Sequence record: NC_049850.1
DNA: 64,000 nucleotides
Reading direction: 5' to 3' (one strand)
The position numbers and the translations under genes are program-made. The notes beneath the pieces are model-generated. The model ran no database searches, was not told the DNA's origin, and saw only the letters and a program-made list of their open reading frames with translations. Numbering within the stretch: the first letter of the stretch is position 1; each line of letters begins with the position of its first letter. Of this stretch, positions 35,330-59,485 are shown piece by piece.

Positions 35330-35536
35330 ATGAACAACGTAGCGTCCCGCATTCTCGGCATCCTGAGCACCGAACTCGATCTCGAACCCGAGCACCTGAG
35401 CGTCGACCATTCGTTCCATTTTTCGGAATTCGAAACCGCATTGGACGACGAGTTCGATCTTCTGTCTGGTGCCGTCGTCTACGAATTCATGTCCGTGCGT
35501 GACATGGCATCGCGCATCGAGCGAGTTCTGGCGTGA
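35330..35536 (+). CDS. Acyl-carrier-protein-like protein lacking the DSL loop
   Basis: SRILGILSTELDLEPEHLSVDHSF / EFETALDDEFD / SVRDMASRI align to AcpP helices I, II and IV. Confidence 0.65.
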   Translation: MNNVASRILGILSTELDLEPEHLSVDHSFHFSEFETALDDEFDLLSGAVVYEFMSVRDMASRIERVLA

Positions 35537-35901
35537 CGCATTTCACCCTTCACCAACGCGAAATCGTTGAGCGTGTATTGTCCCGACTGGAACAGGCGGC
35601 AGAGGACCCGGTGGACGGTGCTCATCAGTACCTGTGCTTGCACATAGGCAGCATCGGGCGCATGCTCAGCCACTCCAAAACACGCTATTTCTTCCACAAC
35701 CTGTTCGGGCGCGACACCCCGTACACGAAGGCGGCGCAAGCCCTGATCGAGCAGATCGCACAAGCACTCGATGGCAAGCGCGGCAACACGCTTCAGGGCT
35801 GGGTCAGCGTGCGTACCGGCTACATTCCGAACGCCGATGTCATGAACGCGGCTCGTGATGCGTGGCTTCATCGCGCACTCGAAATCGGGTATTTCGGATG
35901 A
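35533..35901 (+). CDS. Array-family paralogue (outlier 1)
   Basis: QYLCLHI...QIAQALDG...TLQGWV...AARDAWLHRAL. Confidence 0.7.
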   Translation: MTHFTLHQREIVERVLSRLEQAAEDPVDGAHQYLCLHIGSIGRMLSHSKTRYFFHNLFGRDTPYTKAAQALIEQIAQALDGKRGNTLQGWVSVRTGYIPNADVMNAARDAWLHRALEIGYFG

Positions 35902-36302
35902 ATTCGTTGCTCAAAATGCTAAAGCGCGTATTTACGCGCGGTGCCGCTGTCAATGGGGTTGACACGCGGCTGAGTCCGAAACAGATGGAGATCATGGTGC
36001 TGGTATGCGCCGAGATCAATTATCGCAACCCCGAGCACCAGCAGTTTATCTGTAGCGCGGTAACGCGCGCTGCCGAAGACCTAGATGCCTGTACGTGGTT
36101 CGGGCTGTCTCGTAGCTACCGACGCGCCGCAATCGGCATCCAGTTCCTGATAGACAGGGCCCTCAACAGCGGTGCACTCGGTCGTTGGATTTTCTATGAC
36201 ATGGGCGCACGTGCTATCGACTCCAAGAACGTGACCGCCGCCGTCAACCAGTGTCGGGCCGGTTGGCTCGAAACCATAATCGCGCGAGGACGCATCGAAT
36301 GA
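35898..36302 (+). CDS. Array-family paralogue (outlier 2)
   Basis: QFICSAV...LIDRALNSGALGRWI...CRAGWLETII. Confidence 0.7.
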   Translation: MNSLLKMLKRVFTRGAAVNGVDTRLSPKQMEIMVLVCAEINYRNPEHQQFICSAVTRAAEDLDACTWFGLSRSYRRAAIGIQFLIDRALNSGALGRWIFYDMGARAIDSKNVTAAVNQCRAGWLETIIARGRIE

Positions 36303-50486: not shown

Positions 50487-51055
50487 TTGTAGAAACGTAC
50501 AAACGGTTGAGGTACTGTAAAATTGGGGATCGGGGGTCAGGTCATGGCTCGGGTCCTCTAGGACGCGGAAATAAGGTGAAAAAGTGCAATAATTGAGGTA
50601 GGTGTAGAAACGCCTCGCTCCTAAATACATTAAGGAGTGACCCATTTACACGCAGGGTGGGTTCGGGAGGGGCGCAGCCCCTTCCGGTGGGGTGAGCGCA
50701 GCGAACCCCTCACCGATCAATTCACGCAGCAACGTGTTCAACAAGGGGTCTCGTGTCTGCTCTGGGAATGCGTGTCGCTTCGCTCCACGCTGCCCACTCG
50801 CTTCGCTCGTGATTGCTGTCGCTCAGCCGGGGCTGCGCCCCGTCAACCTAGGTGCCCGGCCCGAACGTGGTTTTGACGCATTCTATTAGGAGTGGGTCGT
50901 TTATACTCACGCTCCTGAAATGCTAGTTTTTATGCTTATTTTGAAAAACAACGAAAAACCCCAAAAACGAGGGTTCTTGGGGTCTTGATGTGTGTTCCCT
51001 TACTTTGCGGTTTTAAGCATCGATTCCGCGTGTTTTTAATGAGAAAAACTACACG
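50487..51055. repeat. Non-coding region with GCG(A/C)AGC mini-hairpins, a 13-bp inverted repeat, short direct repeats and an AT-rich flank
   Basis: GGGGCGCAGCCCC 50669-81 / GGGGCTGCGCCCC 50829-41; GCGCAGC 50696; GCTTCGC 50777 and 50800; TGTAGAAACG x2; TTGAGGTA x2. Confidence 0.8.
50940..50985 (-). terminator. Intrinsic terminator (minus strand)
   Basis: Minus strand reads ACCCCAAGAAC-CCTC-GTTTTTGGGGT followed by TTTTCGTTGTTTTT. Confidence 0.6.
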
Positions 51056-52348: not shown

Positions 52349-52377
52349 ATTCTAGCGATAGCCGATCACGTGGTCAA
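52349..52377 (-). promoter_or_regulatory. sigma70-type promoter
   Basis: Minus strand TTGACC-N17-TAGAAT. Confidence 0.8.
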
Positions 52378-53081
52378 GAACTTCTTACGCTTGTAATCCC
52401 AGCCGAGCGCCGTGTAGAAGTTCCAGATGTTGCCGTGCGTGTTCTTCTCGATCTGGCGCAGAGGGTTGTTCTCGATTCCGTGTGTACTGTCGTAGAACTC
52501 AAGCTGGAACTTCCAATCGTCCTCGAACTGCATGTTCCAGAAACCACGGTCGAGTCGCTTCTTCGCGTAGAACGCGCTACCGGCTACCCTCTGCCAATGA
52601 TGGACCCATGCGCCAAGCGTCTGGTTCGAGCGTCGGTAATCCGGGTCGCCGTACCCCGGGATCAGCACTACGTGCACGTTGGTTAGGACACGCGTCGCGT
52701 ATTCCGGCTCGTGATACTCAACGAAGTGCACGCGTCTCATGCTCGAAATTCCAATGTTGTCCAGTTCCACCCGATACTGGTGAAAAAGTCGTAGATCGAC
52801 CGATGGCTCTTGCTCTCGACATGCCGCAACGGATTGTCCGGCACGTAGTCCCAGCCGTCTGCGTACGCGTTCCAGTCACCGATGTCCATGTAGGTCGTGA
52901 ACTTCCGGAATCCGGGCACCCGGTTCTTCATGTTCTGGCGCACGCGTTCCACCTGCGCGCGACGCCAGCCGCTGAGTGCGGTAGCCGCGTGGTAGCGTCC
53001 GACTTCCCCGAGCCCGGGGATGCCAATGTCGTGCAACACGTGCGGCTGCGTACGCCACTCAAGCACGTAGATTCGATCCAT
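52366..53081 (-). CDS. Tandem paralogue pair (52737-53081 and 52366-52740)
   Basis: Shared IPGxG and NPLRxxExxxHxxIxxFxTxxGW motifs. Confidence 0.75.
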
Positions 53082-53089
53082 GTCTCTCC

Positions 53090-56000
53090 TTACCAGTTTT
53101 CGATCATCCAGTACACCCACGCCATCCGCGTCTTTCTGAGCAGCGGGTCGGCGTCGGTGGTCCGGATACGGTGCTGCCACCACAGCCACTCGTCCAGTCC
53201 GGAACAGCGGTCGAGTAACCGGGCGACACGGACGATCAGATTGTCGACCGCGTTGTTGATTTCTCGATCCGTGAACTCTTGGCGTAGGCCACCGGACGCC
53301 CGGTAGATGGCGCTGCACACACGGTCAGCCTGCCTGTCTTCGAGCCACATGTAGGCACGGCACAGGATACGGCGTTGCAAGTCCGTGATGCCAAGCTTTT
53401 CCGCGAACTCGATCTTTTGCTGTTCACCCCGCATCACCAGTTCTCCAACATGAACTGAGTCCACGCGATCCGCGACTCCTGAACCCACTTGTGATTCTGC
53501 GAATAGGCTGGGTAGCCGCGCCGTGCCAGCCAGTCCGTGTATGAGATACAGCAGTCGATTTCGTTGTGGATGCGCCGCGACAAATCGCGCTCGGCCGCAA
53601 ACATGGCACGACGCTCGGACGCTTTCGGCATCCGTTCCGCAACGATGTCGTTGACTCCATGTCCGATAGCGCCGCAGATGTACGTGTTGTTCCCGGCGCG
53701 CAGATGCTGGAGAGCACGAACCAACAGTTCTCGATGTAACTCGTTCATAACCAGTTCTCCAGCATGAAATCCATCCACGCGATCCGCGACTCACGCAGTT
53801 TCGCCGTGTCCTGATCATCGATGTGAACCTGACCAGTGTGATACAGCCACGCCGAATAGCTGCCAACCGGACTCAGGGCCGCGTGGATACGCGCGGTCAG
53901 CCGGTCTGTGGCCTCAGTCAGATACCGGAACTGATCGCGGCGTTCGCGCTCCGTGATCATGCCCGTCCGCTGCATTTGGTGGACACTGCGCATACATTCC
54001 TCACGTGCCTCGAACAGTGCAAAGCAGATCATGGAGTTACGGCCGTCGACCATGCGATCACGTGCGACGCGTAGCACACAGCGTGCCGTATATCGGATTT
54101 TTGCGTTGTTGAATTCTTCGGTCATACCCAGTTCTCCAGCATGAAATCCATCCACGCGATGCGGGTGGCGCGACGGGCCTCTACGCTACTGTGGCCCGTC
54201 CCGTACGGAATGCCGTGCCGCATTTGCAGCCACGAGTCTAAGGAACTTGCGCCCCCAAGCTCCTGACGAATGCGAGTCGCCAGTTTCTTGTGTGCGAGCC
54301 CGATGTATTCGAGCGCCGCAGCCCCATCTTCCACCGTGATCGTGCCCGCGTTCACCTTCTGCTCGACGATAGTGCTGTGTTCCTCAGCCACGTTTGCGAG
54401 GGCAAAACAAATCATGCTGCTCTGCTTTCGCACGATGCGGAGCCGCGCGCACACCAAGAGCAAACGTGCGTAGTTCTTAACGGCGTGAGCCTCTACAATA
54501 TCGTCGACTTCTTGTGTTTCGCTCATACCCAGTTCTCCAGCATAAAGTTGATCCACGCTAAACGCGTGGCCCGCATCGGGTCCATGAGTTCTCGGGCCCG
54601 GAGTCCACGCGGCAGATGCCCATTATTCAGAACCCACGACGTGAGCGACGTGTACCCCTGCAATTCGAGCAGGATGCGGTTATGCAGCGCGTCACGGGCC
54701 GCGTTCATCACGTCGATCACGTGGTTGCACTCGGTGGCCGACAGGCATCCGCGCAACAACGCGCTCCGGGCCGCAGCTACATGGTTGTCCTTTACGACCG
54801 AGATCGCGGCACAAATGTACTGCGACCGGCCTTCCTCGAATCGTTCGCGCGCCCCTTGCAACAGTGTCCGCGCCGCTGACCGAATTTCGTCATGCGTGGG
54901 CGTCATGCGGCCTCCACCTGCTCGATCATCCACTGGACCCATACGATGCGGGTCTCGCGGATTCCCTTCAGGTCGTAGTACGGATCGTTGCTGTTACGCA
55001 GTTGCCGGGACGACCAGCCGTTGAGCGTAGTGTACGGGTAGATCAGGATATTGATCCACGCACCCAGATCACGCCGGGCACACACGAGATCGTTCAGCGT
55101 GTAGTTCTGGTTCGGGAGCAGGAGATTCAGGTACTTGTAGGCGCGATCCAGTGCGTTGCACAGGAACTCTTCATCCTTGTTGCGGATATAGCCCTTCGCC
55201 AATTGCAGCAGCCGGATTTTCAGCGCTTTGTGTTGCATGGTCACCTCCAAAAGAAAACGAGTTGCAAGAATACAGCGCGGGCCGTACCTTGTCAACTCGT
55301 TTTCATCACTTCCAGTTATCCAGCATCCACTGAATCCACGCGATCCGCGTTTCTTGTGTGAGCGCTGCCGGAAGGTAGCGCTGGTTGTAGCCGGTTTCCT
55401 TCTCGATGTACGATTCCAGTGTCCACCGGAAACCCATCTGATCGCGCTCGGCACCCATGGCCGCAGCCAGAATTCCATACACGTGCTCGCGCAGGTCCTC
55501 GGCGGTATCGACCATGTTGCGCTCACGCCCGATCTTGGAGATCAGGCAGCACACGAAGTCGTCACCACGCAGCAGCCGTCGCTGTGCCTCTTCCAGAATC
55601 TGGCGGTATTCAGCCTTCATGCGACTGCTCCGGATGCTTGAGGCGGCCACGTGGTTCCTCGTCGTTTTCCGCGCGCTCGACACCGACCGTGTAATTCGCA
55701 GTCGAGGCCGTTACGGTGGCCAGCACCGCAGTAAGTTCGACCGGCGTCAGCCCGTGCTTGGAGCCGAGGCCCTGCATGAACGTGTACAGTTCTGAGGTTG
55801 CGAGTGCGACACCCCAATGTCGCTCGTGAATCGGCATCAGTCCCATTATGCCCAGTTCTCCATCATGTAGGTGAGCCACTGGACACGCGTTTCCTTCATG
55901 TCGCGCTTGTCCAGACGTTGGTGACCCGTGCACAGGCGCACGAAGTCGTCGAGGACAACCGGCTGATCTTCCGGGGTCCGTGTGCAGTTACGCAGAATCT

Positions 56001-58012
56001 GCGTCACGTGCGTGCGCAGCACCTCAGCCGCGTCCGGCGCGTTCAGGTGGTTGCCAGCGATACGGATGGCCGTACACACGAGCATCACACTGTCCGTCTC
56101 GATCAGATCGCGCGCCTTTTCCAGAATGCGGTAGTAGGTGTCACGCATCTGCATCTTCCCCTTCCTGCTCTTGTTCCTCGGCCGCGATGCGCGGCAATTC
56201 GCGGGTGAAATCGATATCCTGCTCCACCATCCACCGGGCCCAAATGGCACGCGTCTGCTGGAGGTCTTCGAACACAAGTCCCGCTGCCTCGTACCCGTGG
56301 ACGCGGTGAAGCCATGCTTCGAGCGTGCCCCCATCACCCAGCACCTTACTGATGTACCACACAATCTCGCTGGCTTCTGCGCTGATGGTGGTGCCCTCGA
56401 TTTCCAGCGCGTTGAAGAACGAACCGGGGCCCTCGACCTCGGCGCGGGCACGCTGCTCGCGATTAATCTGGACAGCCGCCCCCTCGATTGCGTGGCACAG
56501 GAACGAGTGGACGTTACCGCAATGCGAATTCTGGCCCGGGCCATTTTCGAGCACCAGTTCTGCGGCACGCAGCAGAAGTTGCTTTTGGATTTCTTTCATC
56601 GTCATTCTCCCATCATGTGACGGAGCCACGCGAGGCGGCCAAGCTTAGCGCGTTCGTTGCACGTGCTGCCGCGCGGTACTCCCAAGGTGTACGCCACCCA
56701 GCTTTCGTAGGTATTGAAACCCTTGATCTGGGACTGAACGAACCGCACCAGTTCTGCACCGGCCTGAACGTACTCACGCTGCTCATCCGTAGTCAGTCGG
56801 GCCGCCGGATTGTCGATGAATCCGGCGCTGCGCCCCGTCAGAATGTTGGCGGCACCCTCGATTGCGTGGCACAGGAAGTGGTGCTGATCGTACTGCGCGG
56901 ACGCGATCACCAGTTGGTGGGCGAGCGCCAGAATCTCGTATTTCTTGCTCTTCATTGCCAGTTGTTCTCCATCATCCACGTGATCCACGCAAGGCGCGTT
57001 GCCCGCATCTTCACTTGTTGTTCGGGGCCCGCCATGCTGGCCAGCGTCAGTTCCGGATGCCCGTTTTCGCGCAGCCACACTTCGAGCGTGTGGGCGCGTG
57101 AGCCGTCCTTCAACTCCAGCAGGTTACCGATGTGGTAGTCGATATCCAACTCTGCGATATGATACGCTTCTTGCTCCTGCGCCGTCAAATCAGCCGTGAG
57201 TTGGGTGACTGCCCACTGAACGGCGCTGCACACGAATTCCTCGTTGCGCGCCTGAATCAGGTCCCATGCGGCCCGCAGGATTTCCCGGTGAATGTTCTTC
57301 TGCATCACCAGTTCTCCAGCATGTGCCGTACCCACGCGATGCGAACTTCACGCGTTCGCACGATGTGCTCGACTTTCGTCACCAGATCGTAAAGCGGAAT
57401 GCCCAGCTTCTTTTCCAGATAACTGTCGATGGTGCAGGAACCCGGGACCTCGCGGTCGAGAGCCGCGTTGATCGAGTTGTAGAGGGAGCGCGAGGCCACG
57501 CGCATTTCCTGCGAGCGCGCTGTCGGCCAACGCCACACGGCACGGTGGTCGACAGAATCGCCGCCCAGCGCGCTACCCGCGCTGGCCACATGGCCGCAGA
57601 TCAGGGTTCGCTGGTCGACCGGTGTTGCGATAAGCCTTTCGAGTACCACTTCGAGGATTTCACGTTCTTGCGATGTCAGCATCCATTAACTCCAGTTGTC
57701 GAGCATCCACGTGATCCACGCGATGCGGGTTTCTCTTAGTGCCTGCTCCTGCGCACGCTGCTCCGTGTACGACAGATTCCACGGATCGTTCCGGATATGG
57801 CCGTGCTTCACGAGCCACGTGTTGAGCGAATGGGAGCCCTCCAGCAGCGTCGCGATCCGGGCCTTGATGGATTCTGCGGCATGTTTAGCGACTGCCGTAC
57901 CATCGGCCTTCGCGTACCGGTCGACGGCGACGCAGATGTACGTGTACCGCTTGCACGCGATGTCGGCTCGCGCCCATAGCAGCAGGTCGATTTCCTTGCT
58001 AGTCAGCTTCAT
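53090..58012 (-). CDS. Tandem array of 13 paralogous 102-154 aa genes plus one unrelated 78-aa ORF (55610-55846)
   Basis: Members: 57686-58012, 57305-57682, 56952-57305, 56602-56955, 56141-56605, 55846-56154, 55306-55620, 54903-55238, 54523-54906, 54122-54526, 53745-54125, 53434-53748, 53090-53434. Shared (I/L/V)CxA, (T/S)LxxW and RxxRxAWxxxMxxxW. Confidence 0.9.
55267..55295 (-). promoter_or_regulatory. sigma70-type promoter inside the array, enclosed by an inverted repeat
   Basis: Minus strand TTGACA-N17-TATTCT; arms AAAACGAGTTGCAAG (55254-68) and CTTGTCAACTCGTTTT (55288-303). Confidence 0.8.
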
Positions 58013-58160
58013 GGCCAGCCACCTCCACGTGAGCCACGCATTTCAGGCCCGTAGTGTATTCGATGAATGCCGCGCACTCCCAGTGCTTTTCGGCCGCACG
58101 GTCTGCGGCACCTGCGAGCGCCGCGAGAAGCAGAATCGCACCCAGAATCATCTGTTTCAT
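57999..58160 (-). CDS. Small secreted/membrane protein (53 aa, not in track)
   Basis: MKQMILGAILLLAALAGAA...; GGAGG RBS. Confidence 0.6.
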   Translation of the reverse strand: MKQMILGAILLLAALAGAADRAAEKHWECAAFIEYTTGLKCVAHVEVAGHEAD

Positions 58161-58190
58161 GGAAACCTCCCCGATGTCTAAAGCGCTACT

Positions 58191-59485
58191 TTACACGCCC
58201 GGCGACTGCCGCGCAACAGAAATATCATGCTTTTTGTACGCGGCCTCGCAAACCACGTCCGCGCTCAGCCAGTTGGCAGCGGCCACACGCTTCATCGCCT
58301 TCACCCACTCGCGACGGAACGCCACGGAATCGGCACCGAACGAGGCCAGCGCGTCGTGCTCGAATTGCATGGAACTGAGCATTTGACGGTGCGGCCGAAG
58401 TTGGGCCTGCCATTCGGAGAACGCAGGGTTCTGGCATTCGGTCAGGAGAATCGCGTCGATGTGATTGCCCTCCAGTGATCGATCGTACAGGTCGTCCGGG
58501 ATCGCGTGTCCAACCACGCACTTACAGCCGTTGTCGCCCCTGTACATGCAACCCCAGCCTCCGTCCATCTTCGTGATGGTGGAAGGGCGGCCCTGCTCCA
58601 GAATAGCGAGTGCGAGGTGGTCGAACAGGATTTGTCGTGCGTCTCGAATGTCGTCGTAGCTCATCAGAATTCCTCGTCGTCGTTGGGGGTGGGTTTCACA
58701 CGCGAGAAGAACATCAGTTCCTTCAGGCAGTCCATGCGTGTCGCGCACACCCGCGTCGCATGCAGAGGATCACCGTCGTCGCCATCGGGCCATAGCATAG
58801 CCACGAATTTGTTGTCGCCTTCAGTGCTGATCGTGATCGTTTTGTGGTTCACCGTAAACCACGCGATGATCTGTTCCGGTCCGTACTGGGGAATCTTGCC
58901 CTCTTTCTTCACCCGGTTTGCCAGTGCCTCGATGGCGCGAACGTACGTCGGGCCCATTGCTTCGAGGCCAATAACACCGTCCCAGCGTACGACCACCGCG
59001 TCCGGTGCCGAGGTCACGACACGGATACGCTGGCCCTGAGTATTCAGGAACTGGAGCAGCGTCGCGATGGACATGCTTTCGGTGAAACCCGTAGGCTCCT
59101 TGGCAACCTTCATGCCCTTGGCCTTGCGTTGCGACACGCCCTCGTCGGCACTCACGTACACGTTGACGACGCCGTTGCCGACGTAGGTCGCAGTATCACC
59201 GAAAACCTTTTGATCGTGGCTCGTGGCCTTGGTCCGGAGTTCGGGAATCGATTGGAAAGTGCAGTGTTCGAAAGCGCGGCGGCCGTCCGAGAACAGCGCG
59301 TGCACCCGCACCACGTGTGGGGTCAGGTATACCGTCTTGTACTTCTTGTTGCTGAACGTGTGATTCATCGTGGGCCAACGACGGCGCGCGTCCGCCAGAG
59401 CATCTGCTTCCGTTTCGTAGTTCAACGCCATATCGTTCAGCGTATCGTGGTTCATGATCTTCCATTGTTTGGGCAACGCCGCCAT
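58191..59485 (-). CDS. Two hypothetical proteins (58191-58664 with CMYRGDNGCKCVVG motif; 58664-59485)
   Basis: TGATG overlap; AAGGAGG RBS. Confidence 0.7.

Follow-up and report, generated by a model that had tools for sequence, protein, structure and literature searches.

The question raised by this locus is why a stretch of about 40 bases recurs at the ends of successive genes in one part of a phage genome, and whether that stretch does anything beyond encoding the ends of the proteins. The window, the whole 64,000-nucleotide stretch of NC_049850.1 analysed here, comes from the Burkholderia jumbo phage BcepSaruman, in which genes 388-401 on the minus strand include 13 paralogs of the all-helical family phrog_8421, which lie head to tail and form two polycistronic units. 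We put at roughly three in four the probability that this repeated cassette is the C-terminal-helix code of ancient paralogs with an end tuned as a Shine-Dalgarno (SD) site, and that it offers passive homology within a stable array without being a dedicated recombination element. Read this way, the repeated cassette is an ordinary outcome of tight gene packing. The array genes, their junctions and a second, smaller array are as follows.

57686..58012, minus strand: g1 (BcepSaruman_401), family member; tail codons 57686-57727 (…RIAWITWMLDNWS); GGAG at 57693-57690, from TGG-AGT, 7 nt ahead of the g2 start.
57305..57682, minus strand: g2 (_400), family member; tail 57305-57343; TGATG overlap; GGAG at 57317-57314, 8 nt ahead of the g3 ATG.
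56952..57305, minus strand: g3 (_399), family member; tail 56952-56996 (…MMENNWQ); ATGA overlap; GGAG 11 nt ahead of the g4 ATG.
56602..56955, minus strand: g4 (_398), family member; tail 56602-56637 (…HMMGE); GGAG from GGA-GAA, 7 nt ahead of the ATG at 56599.
56141..56599, minus strand: g5 (_397), family member with an acidic C-terminal extension; GenBank start at 56605; purine-rich tail GGAAGGGGAAG ahead of the g6 start.
55846..56148, minus strand: g6 (_396), family member; tail 55846-55887; TAATG overlap; GGAG 11 nt ahead of the g7 ATG.
55610..55846, minus strand: g7 (_395), 78 aa, a non-member inside the array.
55306..55620, minus strand: g8 (_394), family member; tail 55306-55347, in which GAT (Asp) replaces GAG, leaving no GGAG; a spacer, not a start codon, comes next.
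55239..55305, minus strand: 67-nt spacer dividing the array into two units; a strong hairpin and U-run (terminator-like) containing a promoter-like TTGACA-17-TATTCT, then GGAGG, whose GGAG lies 6 nt ahead of the g9 ATG.
54903..55238, minus strand: g9 (_393), family member; tail 54903-54950 (…WMIEQVEAA); ATGA overlap; GGAGG from GTG-GAG-GCC, its GGAG 5 nt ahead of the g10 ATG.
54523..54906, minus strand: g10 (_392), family member; tail 54523-54564; GGAG 8 nt ahead of the g11 ATG.
54122..54526, minus strand: g11 (_391), family member; tail 54122-54163; GGAG 8 nt ahead of the g12 ATG.
53745..54125, minus strand: g12 (_390), family member; tail 53745-53786; GGAG 8 nt ahead of the g13 ATG.
53434..53748, minus strand: g13 (_389), family member; tail 53434-53472; TTG-GAG keeps GGAG 8 nt ahead of the g14 ATG.
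53090..53434, minus strand: g14 (_388), last family member; tail 53090-53128; ATC-GAA, hence no GGAG.
53089-53084: GGAGAG past the g14 stop, belonging to the gene after g14.
35533..36302, plus strand: second mini-array (genes _342 and _343), distant from the main array and of the same family.

A scan for GCGTGG-N9-ATGCTGGAGAACTGG, allowing up to three mismatches, returned nine copies (53093, 53437, 53751, 54128, 54529, 55312, 55852, 57308 and 57692), all on the minus strand and all at gene ends, against a chance expectation of zero from 100 shuffles; a repeat search gave the same stretch as families D1-D3, with nine copies each. The earlier note on this DNA had claimed such a recurrence at array gene ends, and this is borne out: its coordinates are the stop-codon ends of array genes, its junction strings are correct and the sites that it listed are real. 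Its list was incomplete, however, missing the weaker copies in g9 (54903-54950), g4 (56602-56637) and g5 and recording that in g3 (56952-56996) only as a variant. The g5 copy is internal (~56215-56251), the protein running about 25 residues further.

The repeated codons belong to a recognizable protein motif. The ends of the array paralogs encode R-[IL]-A-W-x-x-[WF]-M-[LMI]-E-N-W, and in a PHROG profile scan of ten proteins (g1-g3, g8, g10-g14 and the non-member g7) nine matched phrog_8421 (E 5e-10 to 4e-4), among them eight of nine array genes, with significant matches over most of the length. There was no match of g2 to that PHROG profile, and the array profile matches it at 6e-26. Searching with the family profile gave 13 strong copies each in BcepSaruman and its relative BcepSauron, and at least 1440 representative proteins or clusters at E<=1e-3, of which distant members retain Y-I-C-x-A and R-L-A-W-I-D-W-M-L. 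The motifs [YF]-[IVL]-C-x-A and R-x-x-W-…-M are shared across the family, and L11, C27, R96 and W99 are invariant across 46 of its sequences. An AF2 model (pLDDT 96.7) has five helices, of which the cassette is the last, and family members in BFVD align with this predicted fold at TM 0.7-0.8. The cassette is the set of codons for the family-defining C-terminal helix, and it recurs because of amino-acid constraint on a motif that is a hallmark of the whole family.

The tails also lie where the next gene is expected to be initiated. Array genes are on the same strand, with stop/start overlaps of the form ATGA or TGATG/TAATG; 11 of the 13 junctions have gaps of -8 to +3 nt, and only those after g8 (67-nt spacer) and g14 (8 nt) are wider. 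Stops run into or adjoin the next start (ATGA, TGATG), which puts the last four to five codons where ribosomes would bind to begin the next gene. In the mechanism that we propose, synonymous-site selection retains NNG-GAG there, giving GGAG, and where Glu is lost the same four bases come from other codons, in g1 (TGG-AGT), g4 (GGA-GAA) and g9 (GTG-GAG). An ATGA overlap likewise forces the last sense codon to end in A; the rare codons GTA and TTA serve to make ATGA, and g12 ends in TTA (1% of Leu codons) because of this overlap.

The earlier note had proposed that the tail is at once coding sequence and the SD site of the next gene, and codon choice supports it. GGAG is present 4-11 nt ahead of the next start at all ten abutting junctions, as against about 3.4 expected from the protein sequences and codon usage, and none of 4000 resamples reached ten (product of the per-junction probabilities, 1.6e-5). 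The motif Glu is GAG in nine of ten copies versus 52% genome-wide. The spacing is 5-8 nt at eight junctions and 11 nt at two: the 8 nt claimed earlier holds at g2>g3, g10>g11, g11>g12, g12>g13 and g13>g14, the others being 7 nt (g1>g2, g4>g5), 5 nt (g9>g10) and 11 nt (g3>g4, g6>g7). The 11-nt spacing is a poor one and counts against the SD reading.

That GGAG is incidental, a product of amino-acid constraint and ordinary codon bias with no translational role, is very improbable. Such constraint does account for part of the cassette, in that ATG and TGG are single codons, CTG, AAC, ATC and GCG are preferred ones, and the motif is conserved family-wide at the protein level. It does not account for the excess of GGAG, for its re-creation from other codons after loss of Glu, for the use of rare codons at ATGA overlaps, or for the appearance of GAA and GAT exactly at the tails that need no SD (g14 and g8, after each of which the next gene has its own). 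Nor does it fit arrays of the family that arose independently in other phages and end in a different tail, E-T-G-E/D: in two of them (L011 and L014) the tail Gly, wherever the following gene overlaps, is encoded by the rare GGA/GGG (10 of 10; background 0.28-0.37), and the residue at this place is Arg in three of the four tails without it. Arg and Thr codons of the BcepSaruman cassette are randomized (for Arg, CGC 6, CGG 4, CGT 3), and therefore shared descent does not explain the GGAG bias.

From these patterns in the sequence, GGAG would function in coupled translation; a search for RNA runs containing the phage found none. The in-gene SD is generic operon packing and not a special device: of the 134 CDS in the window, 87 come within 6 nt of the preceding gene, and GGAG spacing over the window's genes peaks at the same 5-8 nt. 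We give almost no credence to the cassette being a cis-acting RNA or DNA element, such as a structured RNA, a processing site or a protein-binding site. Part of the synonymous conservation in R-I-A-W is left over and would suit such an element, but RNAalifold on 12 junctions gave 0 pairs and no consensus structure, Rfam gave no match, openness between SD and AUG does not exceed that of synonymous resamples (mean z 0.24), and the motif is without dyad symmetry.

Could the cassette also be a substrate for changing the array? The earlier note had inferred that crossover in it would yield a self-maintaining, expandable array, and had pointed to more than 30 nt of identity between two genes whose middles are unalignable. 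The identity is real: g11 and g12 have an exact run of 33 nt in common (54128-54160 and 53751-53783), a direct repeat flanking exactly one gene, which extends to 42 nt in BcepSauron. Their middles are indeed unalignable as DNA, but not as protein (31% identity); synonymous sites in the bodies are saturated, with the same codon at 12 of 31 identical residues versus 7 of 8 in the tail. Unequal crossover between paralog tails, adding, deleting or swapping whole genes, draws on this repeat, on the contig breaks or double-depth unitigs that three independent public runs show at g11/g12, as the same repeat would produce, and on the one unit by which L014 exceeds L011, two distantly related arrays that are otherwise collinear (one duplication or loss in ~10 units).

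We nevertheless regard it as unlikely, and most of the case for an expandable array goes unsupported. BcepSauron matches BcepSaruman in the main array, with 13 copies each in identical order, and X1, a ~95%-similar phage from a sludge metagenome (~221x), is collinear, its contigs breaking at the g11/g12 repeat and its unit lengths and depth fitting one copy each; no tail-to-tail joints were found in the X1 run. Copy number is unchanged between Saruman and Sauron, X1 fits the same layout, and the array is stable in this respect. No recent duplicates are present: the paralogs are all ancient (mean body identity 21%; same-codon fraction 0.44 versus 0.40 expected, with synonymous sites saturated), and their similarity has no relation to distance along the array (Mantel r=-0.02, P=0.84). 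Every pair other than g11/g12 has at most ~23 identical nt in common, a length at or below the minimum for efficient homologous recombination, and two nearby whole-gene indels (Sau344 and gene 386) have breakpoints that are not tail to tail. Evidence that the cassette drives gene gain or loss is weak, and the cassette is not a dedicated recombination element.

The extent of nucleotide sharing bears on a further explanation, that gene conversion between neighbouring paralogs homogenizes their 3' ends, which we consider improbable, and somewhat more so than unequal crossover. In its favour, 13 paralog pairs have 15 nt or more of unbroken identity, versus 2.85 expected when proteins are fixed and codon usage is context-aware, the adjacent g10-g13 have the most similar tails (0.81-0.88 nucleotide identity) on bodies of 26-31% amino acid identity, and both substitutions in the Sauron g12 tail match g11. 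Against it, copies differ at random in the Arg, Thr and Glu/Ala codons on the 5' side of the cassette, which a conversion tract would have homogenized, and orthologs are 73-100% identical versus ~21% for paralogs. A 39-nt double-depth unitig in X1 suggests that the g12 differences between Saruman and Sauron are independent single changes, g10-g13 have the Phe variant of the motif in common in a clade-like manner, and a block as similar as 93% over 29 nt is found at the N-terminal end of g4/g5, away from any junction. The g11/g12 run, present in Saruman and Sauron between saturated bodies, would fit local gene conversion too.

Why the cassette recurs at the DNA level is explained by three factors together: conserved amino acids, selection for the SD and a biased codon context. 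As to context, CCWGG has 0 occurrences in the 64 kb, and because of this absence GCC is barred before TGG: of 26 Ala codons ahead of TGG, 18 are GCG and none is GCC. By hand calculation, SD selection and context account for the sharing in the MLENW block; the R-I-A-W block has nucleotide sharing beyond what they demonstrably cover.

Comparison with BcepSauron shows mosaic gene bodies. The g4 body (56647-56926) is a divergent allele (dS 0.60) followed by an identical tail (56601-56646), and the g10 body (54544-54871) is another (dS 0.39), its last difference lying inside the tail and being followed by 198 identical nt; dN/dS, at 0.2-0.3, points to purifying selection in both, and dS is 0-0.09 in most other array genes (g5, 0.14). 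That the 46-nt g4 tail is identical inside a divergent stretch has P ~0.008, and constraint could explain this identity too. The sharpest tract boundary, in gene 343/346, is at the 5' edge of the conserved C-terminal codons, and in X1 the 5' 150 nt of g7 are replaced, beginning at the g6|g7 junction. Tracts that end in this manner are also a point in favour of unequal crossover, except that the swaps are between alleles of one locus (86% and 73% amino acid identity versus ~21% between paralogs) and not between paralogs.

Since the divergent tracts of g4, g10 and gene 343 stop at or in the tail, and since the cassette is the best-conserved stretch of each gene, the tail is probably a passive homology patch, plausibly one that serves for body swaps between related phages. 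At such patches related phages would have exchanged divergent gene bodies, and we infer that the crossovers happened inside the cassette. Selection after illegitimate recombination may instead have set the tract boundaries. A bolder proposal, which we hold only tentatively and judge to be doubtful, takes the junction unit (C-terminal-helix codons, SD, overlapping stop/start and the opening codons of the following gene) as a linker by which co-infecting Sarumanvirus lineages could exchange intact, coupled bodies of this widespread family, maintaining ancient alleles (g4, g10, gene 343) as for a counter-defence or host-takeover arsenal, with the 33-42-nt repeat flanking g12 perhaps letting a single unit be cleanly lost or gained now and then.

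The reading of the cassette as helix codons with an SD-tuned end has parallels in known coupled operons. In ccdA-ccdB the ribosome-binding site of ccdB lies within CcdA codons 70-71 (PMC9555053), and Eyre-Walker (1996), as listed in PMC2716372, is a reference on stop-start overlaps in coupled operons. Such operons (trpB-trpA, ccdA-ccdB) resemble the array in that the stop runs into or adjoins the start, the final codons of the upstream gene contain GGAG, and the initiation region downstream shapes both synonymous choices and the choice of terminal residues. They differ in that the BcepSaruman array, where coupling is predicted, repeats the solution at about ten junctions in a row, since its upstream genes are paralogs with a conserved C-terminal motif at the junction.

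The Susskind-Botstein module theory and later comparisons of lambdoid phages reportedly place exchange at conserved boundary or linker sequences. The gene-sized older tracts bounded near gene ends (dS 0.4-0.6 versus 0-0.09 in most others) resemble this, although the 'linker' of BcepSaruman is the coding sequence of the exchanged family itself, and only three or four events are visible in the comparison. Among large viruses, tandem expansions of small proteins that are specific to one lineage include the 'genomic accordions' of poxviruses. Many tandem paralogs of one small protein in a jumbo phage are a likeness; in contrast to an accordion, the BcepSaruman copies are all ancient and constant in number among close relatives, with no recent amplification. 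Bacillus phage G has a Zn-ribbon expansion of ~35 copies (PMC7824862).

Elsewhere phrog_8421 occurs as single-copy members in temperate and N4-like phages, e.g. Bcep176 gp40, BcepF1 and KPP21, whereas BcepSaruman carries an expansion of 13 plus 2 copies; further phrog_8421 arrays turn up in other large phage contigs. The E-N-W tail end is specific to the Saruman and Sauron copies, and the Sauron counterpart of the mini-array at 35533..36302 has three copies.

The array lies within positions 53000-58200 of the window, which megablast matches at 100% identity to 239000-244200 of the Burkholderia jumbo phage BcepSaruman (MK552140, 263,735 bp; genus Sarumanvirus); the related phage BcepSauron is 96.1% identical across the same interval. 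The array consists of genes BcepSaruman_388 to _401 on the minus strand, numbered here g1 (_401) to g14 (_388) in transcription order, and has the following landmarks, together with two other gene groups.

57686-58012, minus strand: g1, first array gene in transcription order
55610-55846, minus strand: g7, unrelated to the other 13 array genes
55239-55305, minus strand: 67-nt spacer after g8, with a hairpin, a U-run, a promoter-like site and GGAGG before g9
53090-53434, minus strand: g14, last array gene in transcription order
52366-53081, minus strand: genes _386 and _387, tandem paralogs of another kind, with the common motif NPLR…GW
35533-36302, plus strand: second, distant mini-array of the array family, genes _342 and _343

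The 13 array paralogs have 16-36% pairwise identity to g1, with invariant L, C, R, W and M residues, and eight of the nine array genes scanned matched phrog_8421, an uncharacterised family. Among 1.84 billion representative proteins, a profile search picked out 1440 relatives at E ≤ 1e-3, and the distant ones retain two motifs, [YF]-[IV]-C-x-A close to the N-terminus and, at the C-terminus, R-[IL]-A-W-I-[DNS]-W-M-[LI]. The array protein model has five helices (pLDDT 96.7), the last of which is encoded by the cassette, i.e. the conserved 3'-end codons (the tail) specifying R-[IL]-A-W-x-x-[WF]-M-[LMI]-E-N-W. As this C-terminal motif is a family hallmark, it alone makes the cassette DNA recur. 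The recurrence at gene ends described in the earlier note is borne out: GCGTGG-N9-ATGCTGGAGAACTGG was found nine times in the window with up to three mismatches, every copy on the minus strand at a gene end, against a chance expectation of none, and the same stretch forms the three largest direct-repeat families in a repeat search. Weaker copies occur in g3, g4 and g9, and the g5 copy is internal. The junction strings and the 8-nt spacing from GGAG to ATG quoted in that note are correct, and the identity of more than 30 nt reported between the genes near 53745 and 54122 (g12 and g11) is an exact shared run of 33 nt, at 53751-53783 and 54128-54160. Nucleotide repeats among the paralogs are not limited to the 3' tail, since g4 and g5 also have in common a 29-nt block, 93% identical (56475-56503 and 56849-56877), that sits in an N-terminal F-L-C-H-A-I-E-G motif.

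The reading of the tail as both coding sequence and the Shine-Dalgarno (SD) site of the next gene is supported. The SD core GGAG lies 4-11 nt upstream of the next start at all 10 junctions where that start abuts or overlaps the stop, whereas synonymous resampling of the last eight codons produced it in 19-51% of cases per junction, for a mean of about 3.4, and reached 10 of 10 in none of 4000 trials. In copies of the motif without the Glu, other codons supply GGAG, namely TGG-AGT (g1), GGA-GAA (g4) and GTG-GAG (g9). Copies that do not need an SD are without GGAG: g14 uses ATC-GAA, the next gene having its own GGAGAG after the g14 stop, and g8 uses GAT and is followed by the 67-nt spacer. The last sense codons ahead of the ATGA overlaps are GTA, GTA, TTA, CAA and GCA, with TTA making up 1% of Leu codons and GTA 10% of Val codons. 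The same family forms arrays of about 11 copies in L011 and L014, two phage contigs from metagenomes, where the tails end differently, in E-T-G-[ED]-x-x. When the next gene overlaps, the tail Gly is always encoded by GGA or GGG (10 of 10 cases; background 0.37 and 0.28), and three of the four tails with Arg for Gly are followed by a gap of 27-52 nt. These tails are independent support for the SD reading.

Dual use of this kind is ordinary and unremarkable: 87 of the 134 window genes lie within 6 nt of the upstream gene and draw their SD from it, and an SD inside the upstream gene is documented for ccdA/ccdB, among others. What the array provides is a clean natural case in which the same bases spell both the C-terminus of one protein and the ribosome-binding site for the gene after it, with built-in controls that reveal the effect: the site is absent from copies with no need of it, and other phages use a different tail. 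In such arrays, polar effects on the next gene are to be expected from synonymous changes or C-terminal tags. RNA structure at the junctions was ruled out as a contributor, given start-region accessibility (-18 to +12) with a mean z of 0.24 against 60 synonymous resamples per junction, no pairs from RNAalifold over 12 junctions, and no match in Rfam. Two starts are ambiguous: that of g5 (56599-56605), for which the GenBank start at 56605 puts GGAG only 1 nt upstream and an ATG at 56599 gives a 7-nt spacing, and that of g6 (56148-56154), where the Saruman and Sauron records differ by two codons.

The spacer after g8 folds into a long hairpin (region 55232-55312, minus strand; -31.7 kcal/mol, z -4.96) that leads into a U-run, and within the hairpin sits a sigma-70-like promoter site, TTGACA-17-TATTCT. 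The arrangement resembles a terminator and a promoter in one, dividing the array in two, so that the array probably comprises two units, g1-g8 and g9-g14.

Outside the cassette, the paralogs use the same codon at identical degenerate residues in 44% of cases, compared with 40% expected from codon usage, and their synonymous sites are saturated there. Inside the cassette the figure is 65% vs 43% expected. This excess is column-specific (Ala GCG 10/10, Glu GAG 9/10, Asn AAC 10/10, Ile ATC 7/7), and the Arg codon (CGC 6, CGG 4, CGT 3) varies at random among copies, as does the Thr codon. Codon context accounts for part of the excess. CCWGG (CCTGG, CCAGG) is absent from the whole window (1-64000; about 190 expected), so GCC is barred before TGG; Ala before Trp in other genes is GCG in 18 of 26 cases. 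The absence suggests that an EcoRII/Dcm-type site is strongly avoided, and it constrains codon pairs such as Ala-Trp. In BcepSauron a single CCWGG occurs in 17 kb, and unrelated phage contigs of similar GC have 32-79 copies per 20 kb. With proteins fixed, codons resampled with context and CCWGG forbidden, 13 paralog pairs have a common run of at least 15 nt where 2.85 are expected, and the 33-nt run of g11 and g12 has P of about 0.01. Amino-acid constraint, raised in the earlier note as a possible full explanation of the nucleotide conservation, therefore does not account for all of it.

Recombination between tails had been proposed to give a self-maintaining, expandable array, a mechanism that is not supported: BcepSauron has the same 13 genes in unchanged order, an approximately 95% similar phage in an activated-sludge run (X1, ~221x) is collinear with unchanged unit lengths and depths, and recent duplicates are absent from the array. 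Paralog bodies have a mean identity of 21%, similarity is unrelated to array distance (r = -0.02), and pairs other than g11/g12 have at most about 23 nt in common. No tail-to-tail joints were reported in the X1 run. Genes of L011 and L014 find their best matches in the positional orthologs of the other array (35-52% identity), and one duplication or loss separates the two. Close to the array are two whole-gene indels, affecting gene 386 and the second mini-array, where Sauron has an additional family member (Sau344; three copies at L007 1133-2168, two in Saruman); neither joins two tails. As first stated, the recombination idea adds little that is established. In the search for more relatives in which to compare copy number, Sauron was the only phage recovered from IMG/VR by pattern and protein scans, just two of the 111 loci from a metagenome pattern scan had family members and none an array, tblastn of GenBank phages added only Bcep176, and the protein clusters included no copy from the X1 phage. 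Relatives ~95-99% identical over parts of the array were present in the activated-sludge metagenome and in three small 2023 runs (together X1-X4), and their contigs break at the g11/g12 repeat. This repeat, 33 nt in Saruman and 42 nt in Sauron (in X1, a unitig of 39 nt with twofold depth), is where short-read assembly breaks. Sauron lacks exactly the single-gene module of gene 386 (363 nt, 52378-52740), which is flanked on either side by short imperfect repeats, and part of gene 386 (52446-52593) is replaced in X1. Two neighbouring family members form one fused ORF of 243-251 aa in other large phages (L014 14100-14855 and L009 10001-10732; P0014/P0153); in the related contig L011 these two positions are distinct genes that overlap.

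Divergence between Saruman and Sauron is patchy (dS 0.60 in g4, 0.39 in g10, 0.14 in g5 and 0-0.09 in most other array genes), and the high dS of the g4 and g10 bodies indicates acquisition from more distant lineages. Positive selection was rejected as the cause, given dN/dS of 0.2-0.3 along with high dS, and so was paralog-to-paralog conversion as the origin of the Sauron alleles, which are 73-86% identical to their Saruman orthologs vs ~21% to paralogs. Of the swapping at the cassette, also suggested earlier, what holds is that the divergent g4, g10 and gene 343 tracts end at or in the tail. The g4 tract (56647-56926) adjoins a 46-nt identical tail (56601-56646; P of about 0.008 for zero synonymous changes), the g10 tract (54544-54871) ends inside the tail with 198 identical nt beyond, and Saruman gene 343 and Sauron gene 346 are unalignable and then identical at 51 of 52 positions, switching exactly at the start of the C-terminal motif codons. 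In X1, the replaced part of g7 begins at the g6|g7 junction. The conserved tail is thus a plausible passive homology patch for allele exchange, but these tracts do not show ectopic exchange between paralogs, and strong purifying selection on the tail, inside longer divergent tracts, would fit the data as well. Allele exchange at conserved patches is the classical mosaic-module picture. Elsewhere, gene _404 (58664-59485, minus strand) has a further local tract of divergence from Sauron (92 substitutions, dS 0.32), and Sauron has a 362-bp insertion near window position 50499, adjoining a gene annotated as a Cas3-like helicase.

For the array proteins, Pfam, NCBIfam and PADLOC gave no family match, and a profile search of PDB sequences only a chance match. 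In structure searches, an unnamed member of the family was all that Foldseek recovered from PDB and AFDB clusters, VIA-align wide reached a Z of 5.9 at best, a value that means nothing for a helical bundle, BFVD gave only uncharacterised phage relatives, and ESM Atlas scores were 0.65 or less. Temperate and N4-like phages also carry the family, as lone early-region genes. An accessory role in host takeover or counter-defence is weakly suggested by the arrays in large phages, the single early-region genes elsewhere and the ancient exchanged alleles. With at least 1440 clusters, a fold without known relative, arrays in several large phages and lineage-swapped alleles, the family is a reasonable target for functional work. 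Several Sauron array genes (locus L002) are annotated as, for example, 'histidine kinase?' or 'helix-turn-helix Cro subunit', labels without support in profile searches; they belong to the same small helical family, as does one further distant member at 260560-260919 of the Sauron record, annotated 'DNA helicase (UvrD C-terminal)'.
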